Sequence record: LR745206.1
Reading direction: 5' to 3' (one strand)
Length of the DNA: 64,000 nucleotides
Shown: positions 2,469 through 57,079 of the stretch, piece after piece
How positions within the stretch are numbered: the stretch's first letter is position 1
Layout of the letters: each line of letters opens with the position of its first letter
Notes under the pieces: model-generated
What the model saw: the letters and a program-made list of their open reading frames with translations, nothing else
Told to the model about the DNA's origin: nothing
The model's database searches: none
Program-made: the position numbers and the translations under genes

Positions 2469-3104
2469 ATGATTTATATAGGGTTATCGGGAAATAGATA
2501 TTCGGGAAAAGATAGAATTGCTAGACTTTTCAAACAAATACATATTCCTGTTTTTGATGCTGATCTTATTCTGAGGTTTGCTATACACTATAATGTTGAG
2601 CTTTTGCAGAAAATTAGGAAAGAGTGGGGAGATTACTATTTCAATGATGGTACTAATCTTGATATGGAAGCTATACAAAGAGATAATAAATTCGGTGAGT
2701 TGGTTAAGTATTTTGAAAGAGATATATTCCAAGCTTATAATAAATTCAACAAAAAGAATAAAAATTCAGTTTATACAATATTTCATTCATCTATTTTGTT
2801 TGAGGCAAATTGGTATAAAAGAATGAGTCAAAATATTTCTGTTTTTTCACCTAATAATGATAGGATTGAAAGATGTAGATTTTTAACAGATTATAAAGTA
2901 TCTGAAATATATACTCTTATTCAAACAGAAATGGAAGATTTGGAGAAGAATAATAAATCAGATTTTGTTATACATAATTATGATAATTATGAGAATGGTT
3001 CTGGTAAAGATGTTTTGAATACTATTTGTGAAATCGATAAAAAAGTAATAGATTTATATCTATACAGTAAAATATCAATAAAATGTTCTGATGAAGAGGA
3101 ATAA
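2469..3104 (+). CDS. coaE: Dephospho-CoA kinase-like P-loop kinase
   Basis: N-terminal IGLSGNRYSGKD P-loop, IPVFDAD, C-terminal KSDFVIHN pattern. Confidence 0.75.
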   Translation: MIYIGLSGNRYSGKDRIARLFKQIHIPVFDADLILRFAIHYNVELLQKIRKEWGDYYFNDGTNLDMEAIQRDNKFGELVKYFERDIFQAYNKFNKKNKNSVYTIFHSSILFEANWYKRMSQNISVFSPNNDRIERCRFLTDYKVSEIYTLIQTEMEDLEKNNKSDFVIHNYDNYENGSGKDVLNTICEIDKKVIDLYLYSKISIKCSDEEE

Positions 3105-3555
3105 TATTAGAGTAAAACTTAGAAGTGAGGTAAGTAGTAAATTAGCATTTGTTAAATTAATTAAAGAATGTACTAATCTTGGTCTTAAAGACGCTAAATG
3201 GACTTGTGATACCCTTCATGAAAACCTCAGAAAAGGTTTGGATAAATCGATTGATATAGAGTTAATTGGTGGTGTAGATGGTCTTGGAAATTCTTATCTA
3301 AAAGTATTCCAACAAGGTATTTTAGATATAGGAGTTAATGCTTTTGTTAATGGTGGTGTAGCATGGGAGAGAAATTTTAAAATGTTATCAATCGGTATAG
3401 GAGAAAAGAAAGATTATTCTGATTTTATTTCTGAATATGTTAATACTGTTGATTTGGAACATGGTAAAGATATTATTAATTTGTTGATAGATAAATTATC
3501 ACAAAATGATTTAGAGGAAATATTTGAAATTATAAGTAAAGAAATTAAGATATGA
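3091..3555 (+). CDS. Protein with ribosomal L7/L12 C-terminal-like segment
   Basis: KLAFVKLIKECTNLGLKDAK resembles the L7/L12 CTD K-x-x-VIK-x-x-R-x-x-TGLGLKEAK signature. Confidence 0.5.
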   Translation: MKRNNIRVKLRSEVSSKLAFVKLIKECTNLGLKDAKWTCDTLHENLRKGLDKSIDIELIGGVDGLGNSYLKVFQQGILDIGVNAFVNGGVAWERNFKMLSIGIGEKKDYSDFISEYVNTVDLEHGKDIINLLIDKLSQNDLEEIFEIISKEIKI

Positions 3556-19988: not shown

Positions 19989-20642
19989 TTGACAGGCAAA
20001 AAATGTCTAGTCAATATAAAAAAAGTAAACGGCAATATGATATTGAAAGCAACAACTATGTTCTCTGAACAAGAAAAACTGTTCAAGGAACGAACTGGTA
20101 AAGATTTTACCACACTCTACACAAAGTACTATCCAAAATTAATTTATTTTACAGCAAGAATTTGTAATGACCCTCAAAAAGCTGAGGATATTTCAACTGA
20201 TTCTTTTATGATAGCACTAGAAAAGATTGAAAAATATGATAGGGAAAAATCGCAATTCTCTACTTGGCTTTTCACAATCGCGAAAAATCTAACCTTACAA
20301 GATATAAAAAATCAGAAGAAATCAGTATCATTGGATGTTGAATTTGATAAGGAAGGAACAACAATGAAAGATTTCATTGAAGAAAAAGAAGAAAACGATA
20401 CACTTTTAAATGATGTTTTTGATAAGAAAGCATTTATAATGAAGAATCGTATAAACAAACTAAAAGAACCATATAAAACGGTTATCGAAATGAGGGAAAT
20501 CAATAGGATGGCATATAAAGATATTGCTGACAAACTTGGTAAGAACTTATCAACAATCAAATCACAAATTAGAAATGGTCGTCATATTCTTATAGAACAA
20601 ACTAAGAAAGAATTTGATGATATAGATGAAATGTATTTATAA
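19989..20642 (+). CDS. ECF-type sigma-70 factor
   Basis: Region 2 (AEDISTDSF, FSTWLFTIAKN) and region 4 HTH (YKDIADKLGKNLSTIKSQIRNGR); true start probably downstream of the TTG given. Confidence 0.9.
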   Translation: MTGKKCLVNIKKVNGNMILKATTMFSEQEKLFKERTGKDFTTLYTKYYPKLIYFTARICNDPQKAEDISTDSFMIALEKIEKYDREKSQFSTWLFTIAKNLTLQDIKNQKKSVSLDVEFDKEGTTMKDFIEEKEENDTLLNDVFDKKAFIMKNRINKLKEPYKTVIEMREINRMAYKDIADKLGKNLSTIKSQIRNGRHILIEQTKKEFDDIDEMYL

Positions 20643-21934
20643 TGGATATCGAACAACTTGGTAGAAAAGCCATAGACCTAATTAGGTCTGAGTGGGGATT
20701 ACCTAAAAGAGGTTTTGTAGCCGGAGGATCAATTGCTAATATAATTTGGGAATTGGTTTCCGGAAACAAAGCTGTTGTTAATGATATTGATATTTTTGTC
20801 TTTGATAAAAAGATTGATGTGATCGATGAGAATGATAAATCAACGCTATTCAAATATAAAGAACATGGTATAAAATACTATGAAGATTATAGTGGTATCT
20901 CTTTCACTTCTTATACAAAAGACTTTTATACAATTTGTGAATCTTTAAGAGAAGGTATATTTAATACCATTTCATATCAATCAAATACTAGTGATCCACT
21001 ACTTGTAATTGGATCTTTCGATATCAATGCTACTAGAATAGGATATTCTATCGAAGAAGATAAATTTTATTGGACAAAAGACTTTGAATATTTCCTAGAG
21101 ACTGGTAAACTAGAGGTTTCCAATCTAAGAACACCATCACACACCGCTGTTAGATTATCAAAAAAATCTAAAGAATTAAATGTTAATCTAACTAATTTTG
21201 AATTTAATTTAATACAATATGCACTTTATTATAAATTTAGTGATATGATTAAATTAAGATTTAAAGAACGATATTTTAATATGTATGTTGATAATAAAGA
21301 AACACTTGATAAATATTTCATATTATGTCGTGATGAGGAAATGGAGAAATATATTTTTGATAAATTTGGTGAGAAAACCGAATTGAGATACTTTAAGAGT
21401 ATAGAATCGGAGGGTAAGGATGATATTGAATCTATGATGGATAGAAGACCAAATATTTTCTCAGAGGATACAAACTTAAATCTGGTGTTCTTATCGGATA
21501 TATTTCTATTTTATATGAGAAATATTTATGGTGATATTGATAAAGTAAAACTTTGGAGTAAACTGAGTTATTTTTTCGGTGACCCAAACTATTTTGATAA
21601 GGAAGTTAAACCAGAAGATATTGATCTATTGGAACGTCTTTGTAAATATGCTCCTAGTTCAATAGAAAACCTCAAAGGTCTTAAATTATCCGAACAGGTA
21701 AAGATTACTAAAATGCTTTTGGATAAGTTTAAGGATGATCCAATAATAGCAATTTCAATCCTAGAGAAGATTAAGGTAGATAAAGATATTGAATTGGATG
21801 AACAAACATTATTAATATTGGAGTTATCAGTTCGTAAAGAGAATTTTAATGACACTAGAGGTAAAGTTAGTAAAATAGTAGAATATATGAATGTGGAAGA
21901 AGACATCACCAACAACCAACAATGGGATTTATAA
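20642..21934 (+). CDS. Nucleotidyltransferase (CCA-adding/poly(A) polymerase-like)
   Basis: AGGS...NDIDIF Pol-beta motif and SFDINA segment. Confidence 0.6.
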   Translation: MDIEQLGRKAIDLIRSEWGLPKRGFVAGGSIANIIWELVSGNKAVVNDIDIFVFDKKIDVIDENDKSTLFKYKEHGIKYYEDYSGISFTSYTKDFYTICESLREGIFNTISYQSNTSDPLLVIGSFDINATRIGYSIEEDKFYWTKDFEYFLETGKLEVSNLRTPSHTAVRLSKKSKELNVNLTNFEFNLIQYALYYKFSDMIKLRFKERYFNMYVDNKETLDKYFILCRDEEMEKYIFDKFGEKTELRYFKSIESEGKDDIESMMDRRPNIFSEDTNLNLVFLSDIFLFYMRNIYGDIDKVKLWSKLSYFFGDPNYFDKEVKPEDIDLLERLCKYAPSSIENLKGLKLSEQVKITKMLLDKFKDDPIIAISILEKIKVDKDIELDEQTLLILELSVRKENFNDTRGKVSKIVEYMNVEEDITNNQQWDL

Positions 21935-21979: not shown

Positions 21980-22300
21980 ATGATAGTTTTTATAACAGAA
22001 TTAAATGATAATAACTTCAAGGATTTTATACAAAATGATTTAGTATTAATTGATGTGTGGGCTGATTGGTGTGCACCTTGTAAAGCTATTTCACCTATCA
22101 TTGATGAGTTATCAGTTGAATTTCATGGTACATTATCAGTAGGTAAACTTGATGCTGACTCTAACAGAGATATAGTATCTGAGTTAAGTGTTAGAAATAT
22201 TCCAGCTATATTTCTTTATAAGAATGGTGAAGTAGTTGATAAATCGGTTGGTAGTACTACTAAAGAAGAGTTAATTGATATGATTAATACACATAAATAA
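21980..22300 (+). CDS. trxA: Thioredoxin
   Basis: WADWCAPC active site and cis-Pro IPAI. Confidence 0.92.
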   Translation: MIVFITELNDNNFKDFIQNDLVLIDVWADWCAPCKAISPIIDELSVEFHGTLSVGKLDADSNRDIVSELSVRNIPAIFLYKNGEVVDKSVGSTTKEELIDMINTHK

Positions 22301-22968
22301 TGAAAACTATTACACATTTATACGAACTTCTTGAAAAATCAGATATATCTATGATAGGATATACGTATAAGAATGAAATATTAAAAGATCAAATTATTTC
22401 TAAAATACCACATATGTCTGTTGGTGAAGTTGATATAGATTCATTTAATATAAAACAATATCTACGTGATATTAAAATCAACCAAATATTAGAAAATCGT
22501 GAACCTTATAAATGGTTGGTTTTGGATATTGGTCAAATGAAATTTTCATCAAAGGATAATATGGAATTTTCTAAATCTCTTAGTTTTTTAATCGGAACTA
22601 TAAGATCTGAATTGTATAGAGCATGGAGTGAGCATCAAAGAACAAGCATTGGTCTTGATTTTGATGATCCAGAAAGTCATAAACAAGAAGAGGAGAAATT
22701 TAAAACTCCATTTAAATTGTTAATAACAACTCCAATATATAAGAGCTCACCCGAATTTGAAATTAGTAATTTCACAGGCGGGAGTTCCACTATATACACT
22801 TCTGATTTAGTATTTGTGATACAAGATAGTAGTATATCTGATAAATTTCTTGGAAAAAAACCAAGAATTAAAGTTGTAAAAAATAGATTTGATATTGATA
22901 ATATTGATATATCATTTGATGAATTGGAAAATTATAATTATATTTGTGATTATGAGTATAGTAAATAA
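22300..22968 (+). CDS. Hypothetical protein, degenerate DnaB/RecA-like C-terminus
   Basis: SDLVFVI and IKVVKNRF motifs; no Walker A seen. Confidence 0.45.
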   Translation: MKTITHLYELLEKSDISMIGYTYKNEILKDQIISKIPHMSVGEVDIDSFNIKQYLRDIKINQILENREPYKWLVLDIGQMKFSSKDNMEFSKSLSFLIGTIRSELYRAWSEHQRTSIGLDFDDPESHKQEEEKFKTPFKLLITTPIYKSSPEFEISNFTGGSSTIYTSDLVFVIQDSSISDKFLGKKPRIKVVKNRFDIDNIDISFDELENYNYICDYEYSK

Positions 22969-23386
22969 CAGAAAAGCATATTATGAATACCACGTATTAG
23001 TAGAATACGAGGCTGGGATAATGCTTGTTGGTAGTGAAGTTAAATCCATTAGAATGGGTAATGTTACCCTAAGTGATTCGTTTATCTATTTAAAGAATGG
23101 TGAAGTTTGGGTTAAGAATCTAAAAGTAGCTAGATATAGTCAATCACATGTATCTGAACCTCATGATGAAAATCGTGATAAGAAATTGTTATTAACAAAG
23201 AAAGAGATTTCTAAGATAAGTAGAAGTTTGGAAGACCAAGGTATAACTTGTATTCCACTTTCGATATTCAGTAAAAGAAATAAGCTTAAGATAAAGATTG
23301 GTGTTGTTAAGGGTAAAAAGCTTTATGATAAAAGGGCGACTATAAAGGAAAGGGATTTGAAAAGAGACCTTCAACGAAGTCTATAA
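22952..23386 (+). CDS. smpB: SsrA-binding protein
   Basis: NRKAYYEY, EAGIMLVGSEVKS, RDKKLLL, GKKLYDKR; start moved to ATG 22952. Confidence 0.95.
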   Translation: MSIVNNRKAYYEYHVLVEYEAGIMLVGSEVKSIRMGNVTLSDSFIYLKNGEVWVKNLKVARYSQSHVSEPHDENRDKKLLLTKKEISKISRSLEDQGITCIPLSIFSKRNKLKIKIGVVKGKKLYDKRATIKERDLKRDLQRSL

Positions 23387-23402: not shown

Positions 23403-23774
23403 ATGTCAATAAAGGAAGAGTTTAATTTTCTATTTGAAAAATTAGAAAAATCAAAAAATGAGGAAGAAGTTTATCAGAACTTAAAAAAAATACTCAAGGA
23501 GTCGAACTCTAAATTTTATAAAAACAAAATTTTAGAAAATCCTTATTTTAGATCTTTGATAGTTGATGTAAAGGAAGATGTATTAAATGAGATATCTCTT
23601 ATACGTGAAGCTTTAAATGAAGAAGTTAAATCAATAGATTCTGAAATATTCAAATTATTATCTAAGGATAATAAAAATCCGGACATAGATAAGTTAAAAG
23701 AATTAAAAAGAGATTGTATTTCGTTGGTGTATGAGGTTGATGAGCGTAGAAAGGATATAGTTAATTCAATATAG
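23403..23774 (+). CDS. Hypothetical protein
   Basis: 123 aa helical ORF ending in TAG. Confidence 0.65.
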   Translation: MSIKEEFNFLFEKLEKSKNEEEVYQNLKKILKESNSKFYKNKILENPYFRSLIVDVKEDVLNEISLIREALNEEVKSIDSEIFKLLSKDNKNPDIDKLKELKRDCISLVYEVDERRKDIVNSI

Positions 23775-25428
23775 ACTTAACATATTTTTCGATCTTTTTT
23801 AATTTAATAATATCATTTTTCAAGTCAAGTGATGATCTTCTACTTAAATAAGATTCAACATCTCTTTTTACTAATCTATAAGAAAATTCAGATAGTAAGT
23901 TTCTAAGGTTGGAAGAACTTGGTGTTAGAAGGTTATCATGAAATACATTATGTATTGATGCTATTTTATGATAGGTGAAATTGATATCTTCTATTGTGTT
24001 TATATTTTGTTTACTGATGTAATCCTTTATATAAGTTCCTATACTAAACATCAATTCAAAATATTCTAAAATATCTTCATGATCTGATCCAATATATGAC
24101 CTTACTATACTTAAATTTGATATCATATTATTTTTGATATCATTATATTCTTTTGTATTACTTTGATAAAAATCAACTAGTTTATTGAAATAATATTCTT
24201 TATCATCACTACCAGTCTTCATTATATTATTTATATTTTCACCAAACCTGAAAATGCCAATAACTCTGGGTCTATCTCCGTATAGAGAAAAGGCTGAATA
24301 ATCTCCACATAAAATAGTTGATATGAATTTTTGTAGATTTCTTAAATCCATAGTATCTTTAGATATACCCATTTTATTAATCAATTTTCTCAAATATCTA
24401 TCTATGTTTTGCTTTTTAATATCAGCATCGGTCATTAATTTTGTTGCTCCTTCTTTATCTTCTGATCTTTGTTTAGATATTTGTGAAGGTTTTTCATAAA
24501 AGGATGCTTTATCTGGATCCAACATATTATCTAAATAAAATACAATACAGAAATCTGAGTTTTCAATAGGTTCCCAATCATAACTACCACCTAGTGAATG
24601 ATTATCATCACCCCAATTTACTAACTCACCTCTTGATGTCATTGGTAAATTAAAATCAAATGGTGATGGATCATCACTATTGTTTATATCAAAGCCTTCG
24701 ATAGAAAGTGGATTATTATCCGGTGTGTATTTATATAAACATCGATGATCACTATTTGGTGAATATCTATCACCTATTGACCAAGAATATCTACCCCAAT
24801 CTCTCCAGTTTGTTTCATCTATTGATATATGATCATATTGTGGATCGGTACCAGATGATACACCTTGTATAGCATACATTAGATCACCATCTAAAAATAT
24901 TTTAGCTTTATCTAGAGTTCTTCTACTTCTAGATTCATTAAAGAATCCAATTACTTGGTCACCGTGTCGTATATTCCTATAATCATCATATTTTAATCTC
25001 TTCAATTTTCCAGTTTTTACATTTAATGTGTTTTTTATATAATCAATATCATCAATGGTGAAATGTTCGGTATCTCTATTTCTATTTCCTCTATTATTCT
25101 TATATTTGTTGAATTCCATTCTTTTATCACCAACACCAGTATATCCTATATATCCTTTATCTAAAGAAAACCAAAATTTAACACAAAAAACTCCCCAAGT
25201 ATTAAATATTTCTTTTCTATTATCTATTTTTAATGCTTTTTTGGTGCTGATATATTCTACAACATCCTCTGATATTTTATCAATGGGAAAATCATAAATT
25301 GATTTTAATTTCTTTAATGAATTAACGAATTTTTTAGAATCATTTTTACTAATTTTATTAGTTAAGTATTTAACAATTTTAGAAATTGTAGATGATTCAA
25401 ATGCTTCGTATAGTGAAATATATCTCAT
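23761..25428 (-). CDS. Hypothetical protein with MRYISLYEAFES N-terminal motif
   Basis: 555 aa ORF; TTAATATATA upstream. Confidence 0.75.
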   Translation of the reverse strand: MRYISLYEAFESSTISKIVKYLTNKISKNDSKKFVNSLKKLKSIYDFPIDKISEDVVEYISTKKALKIDNRKEIFNTWGVFCVKFWFSLDKGYIGYTGVGDKRMEFNKYKNNRGNRNRDTEHFTIDDIDYIKNTLNVKTGKLKRLKYDDYRNIRHGDQVIGFFNESRSRRTLDKAKIFLDGDLMYAIQGVSSGTDPQYDHISIDETNWRDWGRYSWSIGDRYSPNSDHRCLYKYTPDNNPLSIEGFDINNSDDPSPFDFNLPMTSRGELVNWGDDNHSLGGSYDWEPIENSDFCIVFYLDNMLDPDKASFYEKPSQISKQRSEDKEGATKLMTDADIKKQNIDRYLRKLINKMGISKDTMDLRNLQKFISTILCGDYSAFSLYGDRPRVIGIFRFGENINNIMKTGSDDKEYYFNKLVDFYQSNTKEYNDIKNNMISNLSIVRSYIGSDHEDILEYFELMFSIGTYIKDYISKQNINTIEDINFTYHKIASIHNVFHDNLLTPSSSNLRNLLSEFSYRLVKRDVESYLSRRSSLDLKNDIIKLKKIEKYVKSILN

Positions 25429-25489
25429 ATAATTTATATATTAAATTTTATTTTGTAAATCGAAACTTTATTACTATTTTTGTCTAAGA

Positions 25490-25920
25490 ATTAAGAGTCA
25501 TTAAAATAATATGTCGTGAGACAAGCAATAGCTTTCCTACCAGAGACCGATTAAAAGGATTTGGATAAAATAAAATGTGGATGAGTTTTAGTGAAATTAT
25601 GGTGGTAAGTAGCTGTTAAATAAGTTAACATCTTTAATAAACCCAGTGAACCACCTTGTATAACTATATAAGAATATGTAAAGATGTAGGTGCTTAAATT
25701 GTGTTGGTGATAAAGTACTTCAAATTACTAGAAAAGATAAATCCAACTCTATGGAGATTTTAACGAGCAGAATGGTAACACTGCTTAACCAAGGCAGTAA
25801 CGTACATAAGTCCATTAAAAGGTAATCCTAAGTGATGAGGTCACTAAAAGTCAAGGAATAAGGTTCTAGGGTTCCGACCATACTTGACAGAAGTTCCCAA
25901 ATCTTCATATTTGAAGTAAA
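25490..25920 (+). ncRNA. Candidate large structured ncRNA
   Basis: No ORF of 60 aa or more, TAnnTTTG promoter at 25475, many local hairpins (GTC-GTGA-GAC, AAGC-AATA-GCTT, ACTGC/GCAGT, AGTGA/TCACT, GTCAAG/CTTGAC). Confidence 0.5.
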
Positions 25921-25936
25921 TTATGAAAAGTATAAA

Positions 25937-26095
25937 ATGATGGAAATTGAGTGGAGTGAAGAGAGATTAAAATCTCTGTATATTGGGTATTGTAATATGT
26001 GTTCTGTATTAACAATAAAACCAATATTGATTGATGATTTTAATGAGAGTGAGTATAAAAGAGTGAAAGAAACCTATCTCGCATTTAGGAGATAA
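25937..26095 (+). CDS. Small hypothetical protein (52 aa, below the ORF-track cutoff)
   Basis: MMEIEWSEERLKSLYIGYC...LAFRR, translated by hand. Confidence 0.5.
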   Translation: MMEIEWSEERLKSLYIGYCNMCSVLTIKPILIDDFNESEYKRVKETYLAFRR

Positions 26096-26110: not shown

Positions 26111-26512
26111 ATGAAATTAAGAGAAAAAATTAGCAAAGACTACATGACAGCTTTCAAAGCAAGAAATACTGTGGCAAAGAACATACTTTCTGTTGTTAAA
26201 AGTGATATACAAACAATTGAGAAAAACAAATGTAAAGAACTATCTGATGAAGAAGTTATGGCTATTCTATTAAAAACAGCTAAGTCTTTAAAGGAGACTA
26301 TTAAATTTGGAGGTGAACAAGCTAAAATTGAATTAGAGATAGTTGAGTCTTACTTACCAAAACAAATGTCAAGAGAAGAGGTTACCGAGAAGATATCTAG
26401 TCTTGTTGATTCAGGAGTTACAAAAATTGGTGACATTATGAAAGAATTTGCTGGATTCAATGATAAAAAAATGGTTTCCGAAATAATTAGAGAGGTGATA
26501 ACTAATATATAA
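26111..26512 (+). CDS. GatB/YqeY domain protein
   Basis: KDYMTAFKAR, LSDEEV, ELEIVESYLPKQMS. Confidence 0.9.
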   Translation: MKLREKISKDYMTAFKARNTVAKNILSVVKSDIQTIEKNKCKELSDEEVMAILLKTAKSLKETIKFGGEQAKIELEIVESYLPKQMSREEVTEKISSLVDSGVTKIGDIMKEFAGFNDKKMVSEIIREVITNI

Positions 26513-26523
26513 TATATAATATT

Positions 26524-26586
26524 ATGAAGAATATAAGATTAAATGATGATAGATTTTTATTAACTAACTGCAAAGCAGATTGGTAA
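26524..26586 (+). CDS. Putative attenuator leader peptide (Asn/Asp) MKNIRLNDDRFLLTNCKADW
   Basis: 3 Asn + 3 Asp in 20 aa directly upstream of a terminator and AspRS. Confidence 0.7.
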   Translation: MKNIRLNDDRFLLTNCKADW

Positions 26587-26611
26587 TAGAAAGTTATTAT
26601 CTAAATCTTGA

Positions 26612-26642
26612 AACCCAGTTAGTAACTAACTGGGTTTTTTTT
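26612..26642 (+). terminator. Attenuator terminator before AspRS
   Basis: AACCCAGTTAG-TAA-CTAACTGGGTT followed by T-tract. Confidence 0.85.
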
Positions 26643-26669
26643 ATGCAAAAAATTAAAAAAATAGAAATT

Positions 26670-27944
26670 ATGAAACGAACAAATGTAAATGAATTAGGAA
26701 ACTTTATTAATGAGAGAGTATTGGTAAAGGGTTGGGTGTCTCAATTTAGAGAGCTCAAAAAAATGTCTTTCCTAATATTAAGAGAAAGAACAGGGTATTG
26801 TCAAATAATAATACCAAAAGAAATATCACAATCTATTTCACCAGAATCGGTTGTTGAAATTATAGGTATTGTGAAAAAAGAAGAGCAATCTAGATATGGT
26901 GGATATGAAATAGTAGCTGAGTCCATTAATGTTGTATCAAATGCTCAACTATTACCATTTCCTATCAATAGGGAAGAAGGTATACCACAATTTAATGTTT
27001 TGAATAATTATAGACCTTTGACTTTGAGAAAAGAAAAAGAAAGATGTATATTTAAAATACAATCTGAGATTATATGGGCATATCGTGAGTATTTAAGATC
27101 ACAAGGATTTACAGAGATACAGTCAACAAAATTATCATCTGCTGGATTAGAAGGTGGATCTGAAATGTTTGAAATAGAGTATTTTGGTGAGAAAATGTAT
27201 TTAACACAAAGTCCACAATTCTACAAACAAATGATGGTTGGTGTTTATGAGAGAGTATTTGAAGTTGGTAAAGTCTATCGAGCAGAGGGATCAAATAGCA
27301 ATAGACATTTAACAGAGTTTGTTGGATTTGAATTTGAAATGGGATTCATAGAATCTGTTGAGGAGGTTATGCAAATGGAAGAGAATGTATTTGAGTATAT
27401 TTTCAACCATCTAAAATCTTTTTGTGTAAAAGAATTAGAATATTTTGGTATTAATTTAGAATTCAATCCAATACCAAGAATAACGTATCAAGAATCATTA
27501 GAGATTATTAAAAATTCTGGATTAAACTATGAGAAGATAGGGTTAAATGCTGAAGCAGAAAAAATAATTGGTGAGTATGTCTTAGAACATATGAAATCTG
27601 AATTCGTTTTTATAACAAAATATCCTTTATCAGAAAGACCATTCTATGCAATGCCATCTATTGAAGAGGGATGTTCTGAAACATTTGAACTATTATATAA
27701 AGGTATTGAGGTAACATCTGGTGGTCAAAGAATACACAATTATGAAGAATTGGTTAAATCAATTGAATCAAAGGGTTTGAATCCTGAGAATTTTGAAAGT
27801 TATTTGATGGCTTTTAAATATGGTATGCCAACACATGGAGGTATGGGTATAGGTTTAGAAAGAATACTAAAACAGATGCTTAATTTGAATTCTGTTGAAG
27901 AAGCATCACTAATTCCACGAACAAAAGAAAAAAATATACATTAA
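26670..27944 (+). CDS. aspS: Aspartyl-tRNA synthetase, archaeal/eukaryote-like type (possibly non-discriminating)
   Basis: OB-fold N-terminus, LTQSPQFYKQ, YRAEGS..RHLTEF, EVTSGGQRIH, GMPTHGGMGIGLER; start ATG 26670. Confidence 0.88.
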   Translation: MKRTNVNELGNFINERVLVKGWVSQFRELKKMSFLILRERTGYCQIIIPKEISQSISPESVVEIIGIVKKEEQSRYGGYEIVAESINVVSNAQLLPFPINREEGIPQFNVLNNYRPLTLRKEKERCIFKIQSEIIWAYREYLRSQGFTEIQSTKLSSAGLEGGSEMFEIEYFGEKMYLTQSPQFYKQMMVGVYERVFEVGKVYRAEGSNSNRHLTEFVGFEFEMGFIESVEEVMQMEENVFEYIFNHLKSFCVKELEYFGINLEFNPIPRITYQESLEIIKNSGLNYEKIGLNAEAEKIIGEYVLEHMKSEFVFITKYPLSERPFYAMPSIEEGCSETFELLYKGIEVTSGGQRIHNYEELVKSIESKGLNPENFESYLMAFKYGMPTHGGMGIGLERILKQMLNLNSVEEASLIPRTKEKNIH

Positions 27945-28006
27945 TATTTGGGGGAACAAAACTTTTTATATATATTTGTATAAGATAAATAATAATAAGA
28001 AAAACA

Positions 28007-28054
28007 ATGATGTAGATTAATACATATTATAATTTTGTAGTGGTTCCTCCTTAA
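28007..28054 (+). CDS. Putative leader ORF MM*INTYYNFVVVPP with in-frame TAG
   Basis: ATG ATG TAG ATT AAT ... CCT CCT TAA after the TAnnTTTG promoter; 3' end lies in a 9-bp stem. Confidence 0.5.
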
Positions 28055-28120
28055 TGAGAGAATACTGATAAACCGACTAGCCAAAGATGCACTCGGTCAG
28101 TATTTAACTTGTAAGGAGGA
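28045..28120 (+). promoter_or_regulatory. Nested stem-loop leader RNA
   Basis: TCCTCCTTA/TAAGGAGGA, AATACTG/CAGTATT and ACCGA/TCGGT nested helices. Confidence 0.65.
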
Positions 28121-28154
28121 TTTATATTTTAAACAAAAAATTAACACAAAAATT

Positions 28155-28514
28155 ATGAACAATTAGATTAATGAAACAAAATTAATAGTTATCACAAGAA
28201 GTGATATCTCACCTGGATACCAAGCTGTCCAATCAACACACTCTATCGCAGATTTTGCATTTGAATTTCCCGATACTTTTACTAAGTGGAAAATGGAATC
28301 AAACTCTATTATCTGCCTTTCCGTAAAAAACGAATTTGAATTAGAAAGACTCTATGAAAAGTTCAAAGATATAACACCTTCTGTTATTTTCTATGAACCT
28401 GATGTGGATGAAAGGACATCTCTTTGCCTTTATGGAACTCCTGATATTAGAAAAAAGTTAAGAAGTCTTCCACTTCTATTAAAAAATAAAATCAACGAAA
28501 ATGAAACTGTTTAA
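28155..28514 (+). CDS. Pth2-like peptidyl-tRNA hydrolase family protein with in-frame TAG at codon 4
   Basis: MNN*INETKLIVITRSDISPGYQAVQSTHS...W...IICLSVKNE in one frame with track ORF 28293..28514; the Pth2-type N-terminal motif lies upstream of the track start. Confidence 0.7.
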
Positions 28515-32552: not shown

Positions 32553-32627
32553 GGTGTGTGAAGGGAAAATGGTTGACCCGTCACTCTGTGAAAGTGAAGA
32601 TAGCGGGATCGTTACCCGTCATACACC
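32553..32627 (+). tRNA. tRNA-His (GTG)
   Basis: TCACT-CT-GTG-AA-AGTGA; encoded G-1 and C73; T-loop ATCGTTA. Confidence 0.85.
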
Positions 32628-32634
32628 CAAATAA

Positions 32635-32707
32635 GGAACCTAAGCTAATCAGGTGAAAGCACTGGACTGAAAATCCAGGGAGCCCGGATCGTTACCGGGA
32701 GGTTCCA
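32635..32707 (+). tRNA. tRNA-Phe (GAA)
   Basis: CTGGA-CT-GAA-AA-TCCAG; acceptor GGAACCT/AGGTTCC. Confidence 0.88.
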
Positions 32708-32714
32708 CAAACAT

Positions 32715-32788
32715 GGTGAATGTAGCTCAATTGGGAGAGCGTCTGGTTGTGAACCAGAAGGTAGTCGGATCAAAACCGACCTTTCACA
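32715..32788 (+). tRNA. tRNA-His (GTG), atypical
   Basis: TCTGG-TT-GTG-AA-CCAGA; T-loop ATCAAAA, A at position 73. Confidence 0.75.
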
Positions 32789-32794
32789 CAAAAT

Positions 32795-32866
32795 GGAGGC
32801 TTAGCTGAGACGGTTTAGCGTTGGTGTGAAGTACCAAAGAGGTCGGTTCGATTCCGGCAGTCTCCA
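32795..32866 (+). tRNA. tRNA-Phe (GAA)
   Basis: TTGGT-GT-GAA-GT-ACCAA; canonical T arm. Confidence 0.8.
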
Positions 32867-32881
32867 CAAAATAACTAACAC

Positions 32882-32953
32882 GCGGATGAGCGTAGGTTTA
32901 GTCGGCAGGATTCCAACCCCTCGCCCGTTAGAGTTCGAATCTCTACATCCGCG
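32882..32953 (+). tRNA. Degenerate tRNA-like gene (CCA/Trp or TCC/Gly register)
   Basis: Perfect acceptor GCGGATG/CATCCGC and T arm TAGAG-TTCGAAT-CTCTA; D and anticodon stems poorly paired. Confidence 0.45.
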
Positions 32954-32959
32954 CAAATA

Positions 32960-33027
32960 ACAAGTAGTGACTAAGAGGGTTACTTCGATTTTAACGACAA
33001 ACAATACTCTCTTTATTTTTCTCTTGT
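32960..33027 (+). other. Hairpin element homologous to the flanks of the permuted tRNA-Cys
   Basis: Shares CAAG-TAGT...GAG...GTTACTTCGA.T...CGAC...AATAC..CTC with 59031-59158; ACAAG/CTTGT closing pair. Confidence 0.5.
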
Positions 33028-33032
33028 TAAAC

Positions 33033-33103
33033 ACGGGTATGGTGAAATGGTATCATTACGGTCTCCAAAACCGCAGTTCTGAGTTCGAATCTTGGTACCC
33101 GTG
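33033..33103 (+). tRNA. tRNA-Trp (CCA)
   Basis: ACGGT-CT-CCA-AA-ACCGC; G73. Confidence 0.88.
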
Positions 33104-33135
33104 CAAATTATTAAAAATTGAAAAAGGAAGAAATT

Positions 33136-33165
33136 ATGAAAACTAAATTAAAATATAAACGATAG
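33136..33165 (+). CDS. Putative leader peptide (Lys) MKTKLKYKR
   Basis: 4 AAA Lys codons in 9; same GAAGAAATTATGAAAACTA 5' context as the leader at 33630; followed by four tRNA-Lys. Confidence 0.7.
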   Translation: MKTKLKYKR

Positions 33166-33195
33166 GGTTAGTAACCAATTGAAAGTTACTAACCC
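33165..33195 (+). promoter_or_regulatory. 11-bp hairpin starting at the Lys leader stop codon
   Basis: GGGTTAGTAAC-CAATTGAAA-GTTACTAACCC; no long T-tract. Confidence 0.7.
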
Positions 33196-33208
33196 ATTTA
33201 GAAAAAAT

Positions 33209-33281
33209 GCGTTCGTAGCTCAATTGGTAGAGCTTCCGGCTTTTAACCGGAAGGTTGTGGGTTCGATTCCCTCCGGGCGTA
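33209..33281 (+). tRNA. tRNA-Lys (TTT)
   Basis: TCCGG-CT-TTT-AA-CCGGA. Confidence 0.88.
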
Positions 33282-33292
33282 CTAGTAAATAT

Positions 33293-33378
33293 CCGTCCGT
33301 GGGTGAATGGCTGAAACCACCAGACTTTTAATCTGACGAGAGAGATCTCCATTGTAGGTTCGAATCCTACCGGGCGGA
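33293..33378 (+). tRNA. tRNA-Lys (TTT), long variable arm
   Basis: CCAGA-CT-TTT-AA-TCTGA; extended variable region. Confidence 0.75.
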
Positions 33379-33382
33379 CAAG

Positions 33383-33465
33383 GCACCTGTCGCTTAGCGG
33401 CTATAGCAACTGGCTTTTAACCAGTCGAGTTTTCTCAATCGTGGGTTCGAGTCCCACCAGGTGCA
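33383..33465 (+). tRNA. tRNA-Lys (TTT), long variable arm
   Basis: ACTGG-CT-TTT-AA-CCAGT; variable CGAGTTTTCTCAATC. Confidence 0.8.
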
Positions 33466-33471
33466 CAAAAT

Positions 33472-33557
33472 GACTCCGTTCCCGTAGTTGGCCGAACGGT
33501 CCAGACTCTTAATCTGGCGACGAAAGTCCACCGTGGGTTCGAATCCCACCGGGGTCA
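33472..33557 (+). tRNA. tRNA-Lys (CTT), long variable arm
   Basis: CCAGA-CT-CTT-AA-TCTGG; variable GAC-GAAA-GTC hairpin. Confidence 0.8.
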
Positions 33558-33629
33558 CAAGAATAAAAGTTAAAAAATTAGGAATTGACAAAAACAAACA
33601 TTACATTTGTAATATATAAAGAAGAAATT

Positions 33630-33704
33630 ATGAAAACTATTAACAACACATCGAAAAGTTCTAGTCGCTCATCAAGTATGAGTGAGATTCGATTGTATTC
33701 GTAA
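33630..33704 (+). CDS. Putative attenuator leader peptide (Ser/Arg) MKTINNTSKSSSRSSSMSEIRLYS
   Basis: 9 Ser + 2 Arg in 24 aa; own TACATTTG promoter; terminator then Arg/Ser tRNAs. Confidence 0.82.
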   Translation: MKTINNTSKSSSRSSSMSEIRLYS

Positions 33705-33726
33705 TAGTCAAGTATAGATATTTATG

Positions 33727-33757
33727 AAACCTCGAATCTAACGATTTGAGGTTTTTT
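33727..33757 (+). terminator. Attenuator terminator, Ser/Arg tRNA block
   Basis: AAACCTCGAATC-TAAC-GATTTGAGGTTT plus T-tract. Confidence 0.85.
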
Positions 33758-33767
33758 GTTTTAAAAT

Positions 33768-33839
33768 GGTTCCATCGTTCAACGGATAGGACACTCGGCT
33801 ACGAACCGAGAAATTGGGGTTCGAATCCCTATGGAATCA
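33768..33839 (+). tRNA. tRNA-Arg (ACG)
   Basis: CTCGG-CT-ACG-AA-CCGAG. Confidence 0.9.
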
Positions 33840-33844
33840 CAAAT

Positions 33845-33931
33845 GGAAGAGTAATTAAGCTGGCGCTTGACCTAGTCTTGAAAACTAGTGGTACTGAAAG
33901 GTATGGGGATCGATACCTCACTCTTCCGCCA
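33845..33931 (+). tRNA. tRNA-Ser (TGA)
   Basis: CTAGT-CT-TGA-AA-ACTAG; long variable arm, G73, encoded CCA. Confidence 0.85.
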
Positions 33932-33935
33932 AATT

Positions 33936-34022
33936 GGAAAAATAAGAGCAGTTGGTCTAAGCTCGGCGGTTTTGAAAACCGTAGGCCCTAGTGGTGTGTG
34001 AGTTCGAGTCTCACTTTTTCCG
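33936..34022 (+). tRNA. tRNA-Ser (TGA)
   Basis: GCGGT-TT-TGA-AA-ACCGT; long variable arm, G73. Confidence 0.85.
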
Positions 34023-34031
34023 CAAAAATTT

Positions 34032-34118
34032 GGAGAGCAATCTAATCTGGTGATTAGGGCCGCCTGCTAAGCGTGTCGCACCTTCGGGTGTGGGGTTCAA
34101 TTCCTCTGTTCTCCGCCA
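34032..34118 (+). tRNA. tRNA-Ser (GCT)
   Basis: CGC-CT-GCT-AA-GCG; variable GCACC-TTCG-GGTGT; encoded CCA. Confidence 0.8.
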
Positions 34119-34121
34119 AAT

Positions 34122-34205
34122 GGAAGGCAATCTAACTTGGTAGTTAGCCACGCTTGGAAAGCGTCGGGCACCTTCGGGTGTGGGTTTCGATTACTCTGTC
34201 TTCCG
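34122..34205 (+). tRNA. tRNA-Ser (GGA)
   Basis: ACGC-TT-GGA-AA-GCGT; same variable arm as the preceding gene. Confidence 0.8.
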
Positions 34206-34210
34206 CAAAT

Positions 34211-34291
34211 GCCTCTGTATCGTCCTCGTCTTCGAAACGAGAGTAGCGTAACGGATAATGAAAAATGTAGGTTCGAATCCTACCAGGGGTA
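34211..34291 (+). tRNA. Rearranged tRNA-Arg (TCG)-like gene: no D arm before the anticodon, D-arm-like hairpin after it
   Basis: GCCTCTG/CAGGGGT acceptor, CTCGT-CT-TCG-AA-ACGAG, CGT-AACGGATA-ATG, GTAGG-TTCGAAT-CCTAC. Confidence 0.6.
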
Positions 34292-34906: not shown

Positions 34907-35084
34907 GAGAGAGGATATGTGATATATAAGATATGAAGAAAGTATTTAAATTTATCACATATCCTTTAAGTAGATATATAAAAAATAGAATTAAATCTAG
35001 ATTAAATTGGTAATAATGAAAATTATTCCTATATTTGTAATTAATAATTAAAACATAAACGAAAAATATAATATATAAATAATA

Positions 35085-35129
35085 ATGAGAGCTTTACATA
35101 CATACAAAATTACGATTGACTTGGGTTAA
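35085..35129 (+). CDS. Putative attenuator leader peptide MRALHTYKITIDLG (His)
   Basis: Single His codon; 3' end complementary to the terminator 5' arm; upstream of HisRS operon. Confidence 0.55.
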   Translation: MRALHTYKITIDLG

Positions 35130-35154
35130 CCCAGCTGTATTTTATATGTATATA

Positions 35155-35185
35155 GCCCAGTCAATCTTTTGACTGGGTTTTTTTA
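35155..35185 (+). terminator. Attenuator terminator before HisRS operon
   Basis: GCCCAGTCAA-TCTTT-TTGACTGGGT plus T-tract. Confidence 0.85.
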
Positions 35186-35207
35186 TGCAAAAAAATAAAG
35201 TAAAGTT

Positions 35208-35411
35208 ATGAAAACAAAAGATGATAGCTGGTACGAGCAAAAAGTTGAAAGTATCAGAAAGAGGAAAAGAAAACTCCATCTTATCCAAGAGCCAAAGGTT
35301 AGAAAGAGAATTAAGGCGGATTTAAAACGTGAGCAAAGAGGGGCTAAAAGATCTTCTAAAAACTCATTAAAGAAATGGATGGAAAACGAAATAAATAAAT
35401 TAAACGATTAA
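35208..35411 (+). CDS. Small basic helical protein
   Basis: 67 aa Lys/Arg-rich ORF. Confidence 0.6.
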   Translation: MKTKDDSWYEQKVESIRKRKRKLHLIQEPKVRKRIKADLKREQRGAKRSSKNSLKKWMENEINKLND

Positions 35412-35424
35412 AAAAATTATAAAA

Positions 35425-50697: not shown

Positions 50698-51004
50698 AAT
50701 AGTATGTTATTTTTTCCTTTTTTAATACCTCATTGAAATGTGGGTTAATTTCTCTCTCACCTCTTCCCCAATCCTCTCCATATCCTTCAAAATATTTACC
50801 ATCAGATTCTCTTTGTATTATTAATCTATAACTAACATATCCTTTCTCACCATCAAAATCTGTTTGTTCTTTAGAAACCATTAAATAAGTTTCGTTATTG
50901 AATTCTACATATTCTTCATATAGTAAGTCCAATAATCTTGGTGCTCCTGTTAAATCTAACTTTTCTCTAGATTCTGATTCATTTAACTTTGAAAACTTTT
51001 TCAT
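50690..51004 (-). CDS. Hypothetical protein (MKKFSKLNES motif)
   Basis: 104 aa ORF. Confidence 0.7.
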   Translation of the reverse strand: MKKFSKLNESESREKLDLTGAPRLLDLLYEEYVEFNNETYLMVSKEQTDFDGEKGYVSYRLIIQRESDGKYFEGYGEDWGRGEREINPHFNEVLKKEKITYYYE

Positions 51005-51345
51005 ATTCTATTTATTTTATTAAGTAGTCTTCTACCCTCTTCGTCCAATTGTAAATCTTTACAAACATCATTTACAACATCGGTTGGATTTTCACCTTCA
51101 CTAATTCTATACATAAATCCCTTATAATCATTCTCATCCATAATAAATTTAATCTCACCTTTCAAAGCATTGAATGTAGACCAATATTCACTATCATCAC
51201 CCATTAAACCACCAACTACAATTTCGGAGAATTGTTTTTCTAATCTAGTTTGTTTACCAAATAACTCTTCACTTCTTGTTAGTGGTTCGTTATCATAAGG
51301 GTTATGTTCAGATTCAAATAATTTATATGTGGTTAAGTATTTCAT
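51001..51345 (-). CDS. Hypothetical protein (MKYLTTYKLFES motif)
   Basis: 114 aa ORF. Confidence 0.7.
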   Translation of the reverse strand: MKYLTTYKLFESEHNPYDNEPLTRSEELFGKQTRLEKQFSEIVVGGLMGDDSEYWSTFNALKGEIKFIMDENDYKGFMYRISEGENPTDVVNDVCKDLQLDEEGRRLLNKINRI

Positions 51346-54869: not shown

Positions 54870-54941
54870 CGCGGGGTAGAGCAGTGGCAGCTCGCAAGGC
54901 TCATAACCTTGAGGTCGTTGGTTCGAATCCAGCCCCCGCTA
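54870..54941 (+). tRNA. tRNA-fMet (CAT), initiator type
   Basis: CGCGGGG 5' end with unpaired C1, CAAGG-CT-CAT-AA-CCTTG; no leader or terminator upstream. Confidence 0.85.
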
Positions 54942-55028
54942 CTAAAAAATATTAAAATAAATTAGGTAGATTAGAAAAAACTACTTATATTTGTAAAAGA
55001 ATTAATAAACAAGATAATAAATAAACAA

Positions 55029-55115
55029 ATGAACACAATTACTAACATAGCGTCTTACGAATCTTATTATGAAGAGGGTAACCTAGTCAGACGAAATAAC
55101 TATGTCGTAATGTAA
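55029..55115 (+). CDS. Putative attenuator leader peptide (Tyr/Glu) MNTITNIASYESYYEEGNLVRRNNYVVM
   Basis: YESYYEE core (4 Tyr, 3 Glu in total); terminator then Tyr/Glu tRNAs. Confidence 0.82.
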   Translation: MNTITNIASYESYYEEGNLVRRNNYVVM

Positions 55116-55139
55116 GTAATTATATAAACGAATATTTAT

Positions 55140-55173
55140 ACCCAGTCTGACAAATGTTAGACTGGGTTTTTTT
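55140..55173 (+). terminator. Attenuator terminator, Tyr/Glu tRNA block
   Basis: ACCCAGTCTGAC-AAAT-GTTAGACTGGGT plus T-tract. Confidence 0.85.
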
Positions 55174-55187
55174 ATGTCAAAAAATTC

Positions 55188-55255
55188 GGGATGAATTATG
55201 GTGATAGCCGGGTCTGTAAAACCCTAGCAGGTGAGTTCGAGTCTCACACATCCCA
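55188..55255 (+). tRNA. tRNA-Tyr (GTA), atypical short form
   Basis: GGGT-CT-GTA-AA-ACCC; truncated D arm, short variable loop. Confidence 0.65.
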
Positions 55256-55266
55256 CTAAAACAAAT

Positions 55267-55338
55267 GGTCCTATCGTCTAAAGGTTAGGATAACAGACTT
55301 TCAATCTGTTGATACGGGTTCGAGCCCCGTTAGGACTA
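55267..55338 (+). tRNA. tRNA-Glu (TTC)
   Basis: ACAGA-CT-TTC-AA-TCTGT. Confidence 0.88.
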
Positions 55339-55343
55339 CAAAT

Positions 55344-55415
55344 GCTCTATTCGTCTAGTGGCAAGGACATCACCCTCTCAAGGTGAAGACGCGGGTTCGA
55401 CTCCCGTATAGAGTA
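55344..55415 (+). tRNA. tRNA-Glu (CTC)
   Basis: TCACC-CT-CTC-AA-GGTGA. Confidence 0.88.
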
Positions 55416-55426
55416 CAAAATTAAAT

Positions 55427-55498
55427 GCTCCGTTCGACAAGCGGTTAAGTCGTTGCCCTTTCAAGGCAAAGTCACGGGTTCGAATCCCGTACGGAGTA
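55427..55498 (+). tRNA. tRNA-Glu (TTC)
   Basis: TTGCC-CT-TTC-AA-GGCAA. Confidence 0.88.
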
Positions 55499-55523
55499 CA
55501 AACAGACATCAACGTAATGTCTG

Positions 55524-55647
55524 GGTGATGTAGAGCAATTGGTAGCTCATCTGCTAGTTAAATGATGGAATAATCATAATCCTGAAGCTATTATAAAATA
55601 GGCGACACGGTTGGTTCTTGGTGTAGGTTCGAGTCCTATCATCACTA
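55524..55647 (+). ncRNA. tRNA-like RNA with a large insertion replacing the anticodon arm
   Basis: Acceptor GGTGATG/CATCACT, D arm GAGC-AATTGGTA-GCTC, T arm GTAGG-TTCGAGT-CCTAT; about 70 nt insert with small hairpins. Confidence 0.6.
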
Positions 55648-55653
55648 ATACCT

Positions 55654-55736
55654 GGGATGTTATACCGTAGGGGTAGCGGGACAGACTGTAAATCTGTTAT
55701 CTTCGGATTCGGGTGGTTCGACTCCATCACGTCCCA
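55654..55736 (+). tRNA. tRNA-Tyr (GTA)
   Basis: ACAGA-CT-GTA-AA-TCTGT; long variable arm. Confidence 0.85.
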
Positions 55737-55745
55737 CAAAAATAT

Positions 55746-55817
55746 GGTCCATTCGTCTAATGGTTAGGACGCTAGGTTTTCAACCTAGAAATACGGGTTC
55801 GATCCCCGTATGGACTA
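55746..55817 (+). tRNA. tRNA-Glu (TTC)
   Basis: CTAGG-TT-TTC-AA-CCTAG. Confidence 0.88.
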
Positions 55818-55822
55818 CAAAT

Positions 55823-55906
55823 GGGGATATAGAGCGTAATTGGTAGCGTCCCGGGCTGTAAACTCGGTGTCTTTTGATCTTGTAGGTTCGAGTCCTGCTA
55901 GCCCCA
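55823..55906 (+). tRNA. tRNA-Tyr (GTA)
   Basis: CCGGG-CT-GTA-AA-CTCGG; long variable region. Confidence 0.82.
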
Positions 55907-56080
55907 CAAAAAGAAATAATATAATATATTTGGTTTATTTGGTTTATTGAAATATTATATTTATATTTGTAAAAGAATCGTAATCCCAAGTAACCCCTTG
56001 GTCGATTTTTTAACAAATTAAAAAAGATTAAAAGGGAAGGTAAAACTTTTTATATATACATACATATAATAGGAACGAAA

Positions 56081-56164
56081 ATGAAAAATTTAAATAACAT
56101 ATCAATAGCAGTAATCGGGAACGGCGCGGGAGCGATACGTGAGTGGCTGAGTTATGGTATTTAA
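56081..56164 (+). CDS. Putative attenuator leader peptide (Ile/Gly/Ala) MKNLNNISIAVIGNGAGAIREWLSYGI
   Basis: 5 Ile (3 ATA), 4 Gly, 3 Ala; terminator then Ile/Gly/Ala tRNAs, GlyRS and AlaRS. Confidence 0.82.
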   Translation: MKNLNNISIAVIGNGAGAIREWLSYGI

Positions 56165-56183
56165 TTAAATTAAAATATTTCAA

Positions 56184-56215
56184 AAACCCAGTCACGAAAA
56201 TGACTGGGTTTTTTT
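56184..56215 (+). terminator. Attenuator terminator, Ile/Gly/Ala block
   Basis: AAACCCAGTCA-CGAAAA-TGACTGGGTTT plus T-tract. Confidence 0.85.
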
Positions 56216-56227
56216 GTTTTTAAAAAC

Positions 56228-56301
56228 TGGTGAGTAGCTTAGATGGTAAAAGCATCTGTCTTATATACAGAAGATAATGGGATCGTTACCCATCTCACCA
56301 A
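56228..56301 (+). tRNA. tRNA-Ile (TAT)
   Basis: TCTGT-CT-TAT-AT-ACAGA; T-loop ATCGTTA. Confidence 0.8.
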
Positions 56302-56305
56302 CAAC

Positions 56306-56376
56306 GCGAGATGTAGCTTAATGATAAAGCGTCTGCCTTCCAAGCAGAAGACGGAGTTTGATTCTCACATTTCGCT
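56306..56376 (+). tRNA. tRNA-Gly (TCC), atypical T arm
   Basis: TCTGC-CT-TCC-AA-GCAGA; U73. Confidence 0.72.
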
Positions 56377-56381
56377 CAAAT

Positions 56382-56455
56382 AGTCCCTTAGCACAATTGG
56401 TTAGTGCACCTCGCTCATAACGAGAAGGTTATCGGTTCGAATCCGGTAGGGACTA
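56382..56455 (+). tRNA. tRNA (CAT), probably Ile2 (lysidine type)
   Basis: CTCG-CT-CAT-AA-CGAG; C4-G69 and C5-G68 pairs as in TilS substrates; elongator Met not excluded. Confidence 0.7.
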
Positions 56456-56501
56456 CAAAATGAGAAAACATTAAAACCATCTCACCAGGATGTAAAATAC
56501 C

Positions 56502-56573
56502 GCAGTAATGGTGTTAATGATAGCACATGAGACTTCCAATCTCAAGGTGTCGGTTCGAGTCCGATTTACTGCT
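56502..56573 (+). tRNA. tRNA-Gly (TCC)
   Basis: TGAGA-CT-TCC-AA-TCTCA; U73. Confidence 0.85.
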
Positions 56574-56634
56574 CAAGTATTTTAATATATATTCCAATCC
56601 AATTTATGGTTGGAAGATAAAATTAGAATTTATT

Positions 56635-57072: not shown

Positions 57073-57079
57073 AAAATAT

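Follow-up and report, generated by a model that had tools for sequence, protein, structure and literature searches.

Large, intricately folded RNAs with many invariant nucleotides are rare, and almost every one whose function has been worked out is a ribozyme, an RNP core or a complex sensor. Several of them are encoded beside a protein partner, such as tmRNA (ssrA) with SmpB, OLE with OapA, and HEARO/omega RNA with IscB, whereas the large ornate RNAs GOLLD and ROOL of phages and bacteria, which are of unknown function, are found near tRNA and translation genes. In tmRNA the 5' and 3' ends pair into an acceptor stem, and in bacterial RNase P RNA (rnpB), the partner of RnpA, helix P4 is made from two distant conserved strands. 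T-box leaders lie upstream of translation and aaRS-linked genes. We analyzed a 64,000-nt stretch of the phage record LR745206.1 (hereafter the window) and found in it the gene of a structured RNA of about 420 nt that matches no described RNA family and that lies, in most relatives, among translation genes, downstream of smpB and just upstream of yqeY. It is therefore a new candidate phage RNA acting on tRNA or the ribosome. Genomes of this size have been assigned to the "Mahaphage" clade with predicted Bacteroidetes hosts (PMC7162821).

Identification of an ORF-free gap upstream of yqeY

The window has 29.7% G+C, is gene dense and holds 27 tRNA genes. The genes preceding the gap encode a sigma factor (19989-20642, +), a 430-aa protein (20642-21934, +), thioredoxin (21980-22300, +), a 222-aa protein (22300-22968, +), SmpB (22889-23386, +; Pfam SmpB 2.6e-52 and NCBIfam equivalog at 179 bits), a 123-aa protein (23403-23774, +) and a 555-aa protein without known domains (23761-25428, -). 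The gap (25429-25936) is followed by a 52-aa ORF (25937-26095, +), YqeY (26111-26512, +; Pfam YqeY 1.6e-17; PHROG 1460, named "tRNA amidotransferase") and a class II synthetase (26580-27944, +), which NCBIfam places as a non-discriminating aspartyl-tRNA synthetase, aspartate--tRNA(Asn) ligase (NF003483, 474 bits against a cut-off of 353).

The gap contains no ORF of 75 aa or more, and all six frames carry TAA, TAG and TGA stops, so that recoding does not rescue a gene. Apart from the tRNA arrays it is the largest such gap in the window, with gaps of similar size at 27945-28500 and 34907-35424. A Bacteroidetes-type promoter is present, consisting of a -33 TTTG (25452-25455) and, 19 nt downstream, a -7 TAnnTTTG box (25475-25482), and the transcription start was inferred at about 25489, giving an RNA of about 25489-25912. 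The G+C content rises to 0.375 at 25700-25899, against 0.297 for the window. Folding of the single sequence was not significant (z = -1.08 on the + strand and +1.18 on the - strand), and the evidence for structure therefore comes from comparison rather than from the fold. A scan of the window with all 4227 Rfam 15 models at gathering score detected only tRNAs, and a scan of the gap at E up to 10 detected nothing.

The RNA is conserved in huge phages

To search for relatives, we first carried out a DNA-level search of 50,697 phage records, which matched only the source record LR745206.1. Blastn against the 642-kb sister phage LR756502.1 then found a 28-nt match beside the yqeY of that phage, whereas the region upstream of its AspRS homologue contained different genes and no element. 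An 18-nt word taken from this match, scanned over IMG/VR, gave ten true homologues on contigs of up to 476 kb. A first relaxed pattern also produced 11 new hits that were coding-sequence false positives, but a three-block pattern gave 18 viral and 90 metagenome contigs and none in one genome for each of 185,579 prokaryote species. Locus searches based on yqeY and smpB added more, and nhmmer delimited about 120 instances, 84 of them distinct and full-length. The long contigs range from 130 to 493 kb, and every near-complete genome tested has exactly one copy. Record names and run labels point to marine, estuary, freshwater, sediment, sludge and wastewater samples.

Across the 84 homologues there was no codon periodicity, and the lengths were not multiples of three. 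A TAnnTTTG box stands in the same place in 61 of 78 homologues. A wastewater metatranscriptome contained short contigs of relatives over the RNA but not over its flanks. Since these were contigs rather than reads, none came from this phage itself, and only the conserved part could map at 80% identity, this is weak evidence and nothing more than a hint. No description of this RNA was found in full-text literature searches, and a 2023 catalogue of more than 10,000 viral RNA candidates (PMC10690425) does not mention smpB, yqeY or huge phages in its text, although an unnamed entry in its supplementary lists cannot be excluded. We conclude that the RNA family is almost certainly real and, as far as Rfam 15 and these searches show, undescribed. 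This agrees with the sequence-only reading, which had inferred a large structured RNA belonging either to a class such as GOLLD or ROOL or to a new one; the latter alternative is the one that holds.

Covariation supports a 5' stem, two pseudoknots and a five-way junction

We next examined the structure by comparative analysis. The 3' domain (25746-25912) was aligned by sequence only (alignment A1), a structure was written, a covariance model of 158 positions and 34 pairs (R1) was built, and 94 matches were re-aligned (alignment A2). On A2, 94% of cells form standard pairs and 23 of 34 pairs show changes on both sides. None of 500 column shuffles reached the observed values, and sliding the 3' partners by 1-3 columns decreased pairing to 36-52%. 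A2 was fitted to the model and hence leans toward it, but A1 already gave 88% pairing and 22 pairs with double changes. At a threshold of 84 bits, the window scored 163.4 bits (E 2e-37), the 93 family matches ranged from 84.6 to 174.5 bits, and the next-best hit, in coding sequence, scored 22.8 bits. A second weak hit in the window (50925-51057, -) lies inside genes and was attributed to chance. The alignment and the covariance model are enough to define the family.

The 3' domain (25750-25909, +) is a five-way junction with invariant loops. It contains a closing helix (25750-25760/25899-25909), hairpin Ha (25765-25770/25781-25786) with an invariant 10-nt loop (25771-25780), a variable hairpin Hb (25793-25813), hairpin Hd (25832-25844), and helix He (25850-25855/25883-25888) enclosing hairpin Hf (25862-25865/25876-25879). 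An invariant single strand, CAGAAGTTCC (25888-25897), was found in 73 of 73 rows of A1. Its GTTCC may pair with GG(T)AAC of the Ha loop (duplex of -4.8 kcal/mol), giving a possible third pseudoknot with a bulged U. This pairing is inferred only, since both motifs are invariant and covariation cannot test it, but both are lost together in L168, a divergent member. The invariant loop motif occurred elsewhere in the window, tRNA genes included, no more than expected by chance.

The middle part (25590-25758) showed 83% overall pairing on a sequence-only alignment, with many double changes. It contains helix P2a (25601-25605/25651-25655), helix P2b (25612-25616/25643-25647; 90% paired, with 4 of 5 pairs changed on both sides) and pseudoknot PK1 (25628-25636 with 25679-25687; 88-93% paired, with 7 of 9 pairs changed on both sides). 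An invariant GTAAGTA / GTGAAC internal loop lies between P2a and P2b. A second pseudoknot, PK2 (25688-25749), is formed by helix a (25688-25695 with 25713-25720; 74% paired, with all 7 counted pairs changed on both sides) crossing helix b (25701-25707 with 25743-25749; 77% paired). The P1 domain (25498-25594) consists of a 10-bp stem (25498-25507 with 25585-25594) around a variable insert. The stem covaries in about 50 of 84 sequences, for example, A-U to G-C at 25505/25587, but the domain is absent or replaced in some subclades. Thus, the conserved core is the 3' 160 nt plus the pseudoknotted middle part, while the first 100 nt vary. LR756502 keeps only a short leader plus the 3' domain, and L046, another variant, keeps only part of the 5' half.

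Of the helices proposed in the sequence-only reading, GGTGG/CCACC (P2a), AGTGA/TCACT (Hd) and GTCAAG/CTTGAC (He) were confirmed by covariation, and TGTTAA/TTAACA was weak (75% paired, with little covariation). ACTGC/GCAGT was not supported, because the conserved covarying helix is GAGCAG/CTGCTT, which closes the invariant 10-nt loop, and GGAA/TTCC was not supported, because the conserved inner hairpin is GGTT/GACC. GTC-GTGA-GAC and AAGC/GCTT lie in the variable insert and are lineage specific, and CTTCA/TGAAG is specific to this window and competes with the conserved closing helix.

The RNA lies among translation genes

Analysis of the gene context showed that the commonest order is (430 aa)-thioredoxin-(222 aa)-smpB-(123 aa)-(555 aa, opposite strand)-RNA-yqeY. 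In most subclades smpB lies upstream on the same strand wherever the contig reaches that far, and in most members yqeY follows on the same strand. One subclade has smpB, or smpB plus the 123-aa gene, directly before the RNA and yqeY directly after it. Another has smpB-RNA and then infC (IF3) 235 nt later, with no yqeY, and another has a SIS-domain gene and a small divergent ORF upstream, then RNA-yqeY, with no smpB within 4-5 kb. One has a methyltransferase between the RNA and yqeY. The link is therefore with yqeY and smpB and not, as the sequence-only reading had it, with an operon including AspRS, which is a neighbor only in this phage and lies elsewhere, without the element, in LR756502.

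In most members the ATG of the next gene lies 38-46 nt after the GTTCC motif, and only 12 of 80 members have a TAnnTTTG box in between, so that the next gene is most likely transcribed from the promoter of the RNA. L167 and L168 are 99.7% identical except that an 831-nt block holding the RNA and yqeY in L168 is replaced by 175 nt in L167, and the reduced version in LR756502 keeps exactly the domain next to yqeY. However, gene order is inherited among related phages, and adjacency is therefore weak evidence of a functional link. Moreover, L046, L050 and L051 have yqeY without the 3' domain, and other jumbo phages have smpB with neither this RNA nor yqeY nearby.

It is possible, although less likely than the partner or leader role considered below, that this is a trans-acting large RNA with a function unrelated to its neighbors, such as a ribozyme or a self-assembling ornate RNA like GOLLD, ROOL or raiA, placed in the translation island only through inherited gene order. 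Its size, its pseudoknots and its about 60 invariant loop and junction nucleotides are typical of such classes, it persists when either neighbor is missing, and it is absent from all cellular genomes scanned. On the other hand, it has no sequence or structure match to GOLLD, ROOL, raiA, OLE or HEARO, and the tight, fixed spacing to the next gene and the lack of a separate promoter for that gene suggest coupling. There is also no clear terminator of its own in about half of the members. Compared with GOLLD, the RNA is smaller, and compared with GOLLD and ROOL, it occurs in a different host range (huge phages with Bacteroidetes-type promoters) and usually lies between smpB and yqeY.

Comparison with tmRNA, RNase P RNA and leader RNAs

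We investigated whether the RNA could be a very divergent ribosome-rescue RNA, with the 3' domain acting as a small tRNA-like plus messenger-like module. smpB followed by the RNA on the same strand mirrors the bacterial smpB-ssrA layout, and in several lineages the RNA starts right after smpB. The length and the several pseudoknots resemble tmRNA. All five near-complete genomes encode one canonical SmpB with the C-terminal tail but no tmRNA above the Rfam cut-off, the best whole-genome hits being tRNAs of 31 bits or less. A different jumbo-phage contig (L183) has a canonical tmRNA beside smpB, and several others have smpB with neither. However, no Rfam tmRNA model of any type matched the region or 8 other members at E up to 10, and ARAGORN found nothing at its default or at 90% of its threshold. 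At 70% it called a tmRNA over the 3' domain in about 25 members, reading the closing helix as the acceptor stem and finding a short frame that ends in stops inside hairpin Hd, but it also fired on 39 of 252 shuffled sequences, and we counted these calls only as a lead. The tag would be only 4-8 residues, and whether its frame is conserved remains unclear, since the frame ends in stops inside Hd in all variants but stops are frequent in this A+U-rich sequence and the frame shifts with indels. The 5' end forms the local stem P1 and does not pair with the 3' end. The only long-range helix closes the 3' domain; it is A-U rich, has no conserved G-U at the third pair, is separated from He by 13 nt, with no T-arm next to a 3' acceptor strand, and is followed by U or A, with no CCA in register. 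Other phages carry smpB without this RNA, and the tmRNA of the host could serve the phage SmpB. A tmRNA analogue appears unlikely.

A reduced, rewired RNase P-like RNA that works with the phage-encoded RNase P protein on the many phage tRNA precursors was considered next. Four of the five near-complete genomes encode RnpA above the Pfam cut-off, which in the genome of the window carries the RNR motif, and none of the five has a class A RNase P RNA (RF00010). The gap beside rnpA has low G+C, looks like decayed coding sequence and gave no RNA signal. By eye, ACAGAA stands directly 5' of the invariant GTTCC, which can pair with the Ha loop with a bulged U, as in helix P4; there are also AAAAGTC and AAGGTAAGG motifs, and the size is right, but this likeness rests on short words. 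No Rfam RNase P model (classes A and B, archaeal, type T; RF00010, RF00011, RF00373, RF02357) matched at E up to 10, and R1 found nothing in Escherichia coli rnpB. The topology also differs: a 5' pseudoknot domain is followed by a closed 3' domain, the would-be 5' strand of P4 lies in the loop of a covarying hairpin, and there is no P1 between the ends of the RNA. In addition, rnpA lies about 260 kb away, and one genome (G002, 95% complete) has the RNA but no rnpA. Of the explanations considered, this one is the least likely. That the RNA is the missing partner of either SmpB or RnpA, a radically rebuilt ribosome-rescue RNA or a minimal RNase P-like ribozyme that evolved in phages, is doubtful but not excluded, and either would be the first virus-specific version of a universal translation RNA.

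A purely cis-acting riboswitch or T-box-like leader, which would sense a small molecule or an uncharged tRNA and set read-through into yqeY or infC by forming the closing helix ahead of a U-run, was also judged improbable. The RNA is upstream of, and on the same strand as, a translation gene (yqeY in most members and infC in one subclade), and its junctions are conserved, as in aptamers. The closing helix is followed by a run of U in about half of the members, whereas in the others, including the window, a small alternative hairpin overlaps its 3' strand. Like T-boxes, the RNA has two domains, and the TGGT in the invariant loop could pair with tRNA ACCA. However, the Rfam T-box (RF00230) and riboswitch models did not match, and no T-box sequence, specifier loop or local terminator/antiterminator pair was found; a T-box-like word at 25596-25608 is one strand of the covarying helix P2a and varies with its partner. 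At 300-430 nt the RNA exceeds known leaders, and the closing helix, being A+U rich and spanning 150 nt, is a poor intrinsic terminator. The TGGT loop motif and the GTTCC tail are lost together in L168, which suggests an internal partner rather than tRNA, and yqeY exists without the RNA in some phages. No SRP RNA model matched either.

A possible partner or leader for tRNA-binding proteins

In the absence of binding or expression experiments, we tentatively favor a role in which the RNA, made from its own promoter on the same transcript as yqeY, works as a partner, either a true RNP subunit or an autoregulatory leader, for the tRNA-binding proteins encoded beside it. Such a role would be consistent with the large RNAs that lie next to their protein partners and with tRNA mimicry in autoregulation, as in the thrS operator, although the RNA has no homology to OLE, HEARO/omega RNA or the raiA motif and is larger and more ornate than any known protein-binding leader. 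The first candidate is YqeY, a free-standing copy of the GatB tail domain, which in GatCAB binds the tRNA D-loop, and the second is SmpB, which binds the elbow of the tRNA-like part of tmRNA. The invariant Ha loop, which resembles a tRNA D-loop, and the compact 3' domain would offer a tRNA-like surface, but this resemblance is judged by eye, and the Rfam tRNA model does not match the RNA. The likely result of such a mechanism would be control of, or help with, a tRNA-linked step of translation during infection. In this phage yqeY is followed by the non-discriminating AspRS, which points to the Asp-tRNA(Asn) route.

Variation in the 3' domain and at the RNA locus

A subset of members of the RNA family (L020, L099, L054, L144, L087 and L012) carries a conserved insert of about 17 nt, which ends in GATCGAAA, in the otherwise variable hairpin Hb of the 3' domain, and in the same members the junction changes from TTAAAAGG to TTTAAGAG. 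At the 3' end of the domain, the window-specific hairpin CTTCA-TATT-TGAAG (window 25903-25917) overlaps the 3' strand of the conserved closing helix. Members of the same helix class have a similar small hairpin (TTCAT...ATGAA), which could be an alternative-pairing switch. The search with R1, the covariance model of the 3' domain, also returned a weak match at window 50925-51057 on the - strand (22.8 bits, E about 0.01), which lies inside two - strand genes and was considered a chance match.

Comparison of two phage contigs, L167 and L168, which are otherwise 99.7% identical, showed that they differ by a clean replacement. An 831-nt block containing the RNA plus yqeY in L168 (5200-6030) is replaced by 175 nt in L167 (5201-5375), and the last 22 nt of yqeY are kept in both contigs.

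Translation genes encoded by the huge phages

To examine whether SmpB (window 22889-23386) is accompanied by a tmRNA, the whole records LR745206.1 and LR756502.1 and three IMG/VR genomes were searched. Each of these huge phages encodes one canonical SmpB with its C-terminal tail, but no tmRNA reached the Rfam cut-off anywhere in the genome, the best hits being tRNAs of 31 bits or less. In contrast, a different jumbo-phage contig (L183, an IMG/VR contig of 193 kb) carries a canonical tmRNA (2289-2644, 85 bits) next to its smpB. Some large phages therefore have the standard pair.

We also found that a phage-encoded RNase P protein (RnpA) is present in 4 of the 5 genomes, with no class A RNase P RNA detectable. 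In LR745206.1, RnpA is located at 76444-76752 (2909-3256 of the extracted locus L238, in which the RNR motif was read); it was additionally found in LR756502.1 at 525189-525473 and in two IMG/VR genomes. The 548-nt gap upstream of rnpA is low in G+C and looks like decayed coding sequence. In window 26111-27944, YqeY, which is GatB-tail-like, is followed by a non-discriminating AspRS, aspartate--tRNA(Asn) ligase (474 bits), which hints at a phage-borne piece of the indirect Asn-tRNA pathway.

Other ORF-free stretches and tRNA arrays

Two further stretches of more than 500 nt, at window 27945-28500 and 34907-35424, contain no ORF of 75 aa or more and no tRNAs. The first holds a 73-aa ORF at 28293-28514, and Rfam finds nothing in either stretch.

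At the end of a tRNA array, the Rfam tRNA-Sec model matched window 34031-34115 at 47.4 bits, just over its 47-bit cut-off, but ARAGORN does not call it. At window 55524-55647, a tRNA model match (40.9 bits) spans 124 nt for a 71-position model, which would mean an insertion of about 50 nt, possibly an intron, and ARAGORN does not call a tRNA there. The tRNA arrays at window 32554-34291 and 54870-59250 contain tandem duplicates (His-Phe-His-Phe, four Lys, four Glu and two Tyr), and several of the tRNA genes have unusually long variable regions for their type, such as Lys genes of 84-87 nt.
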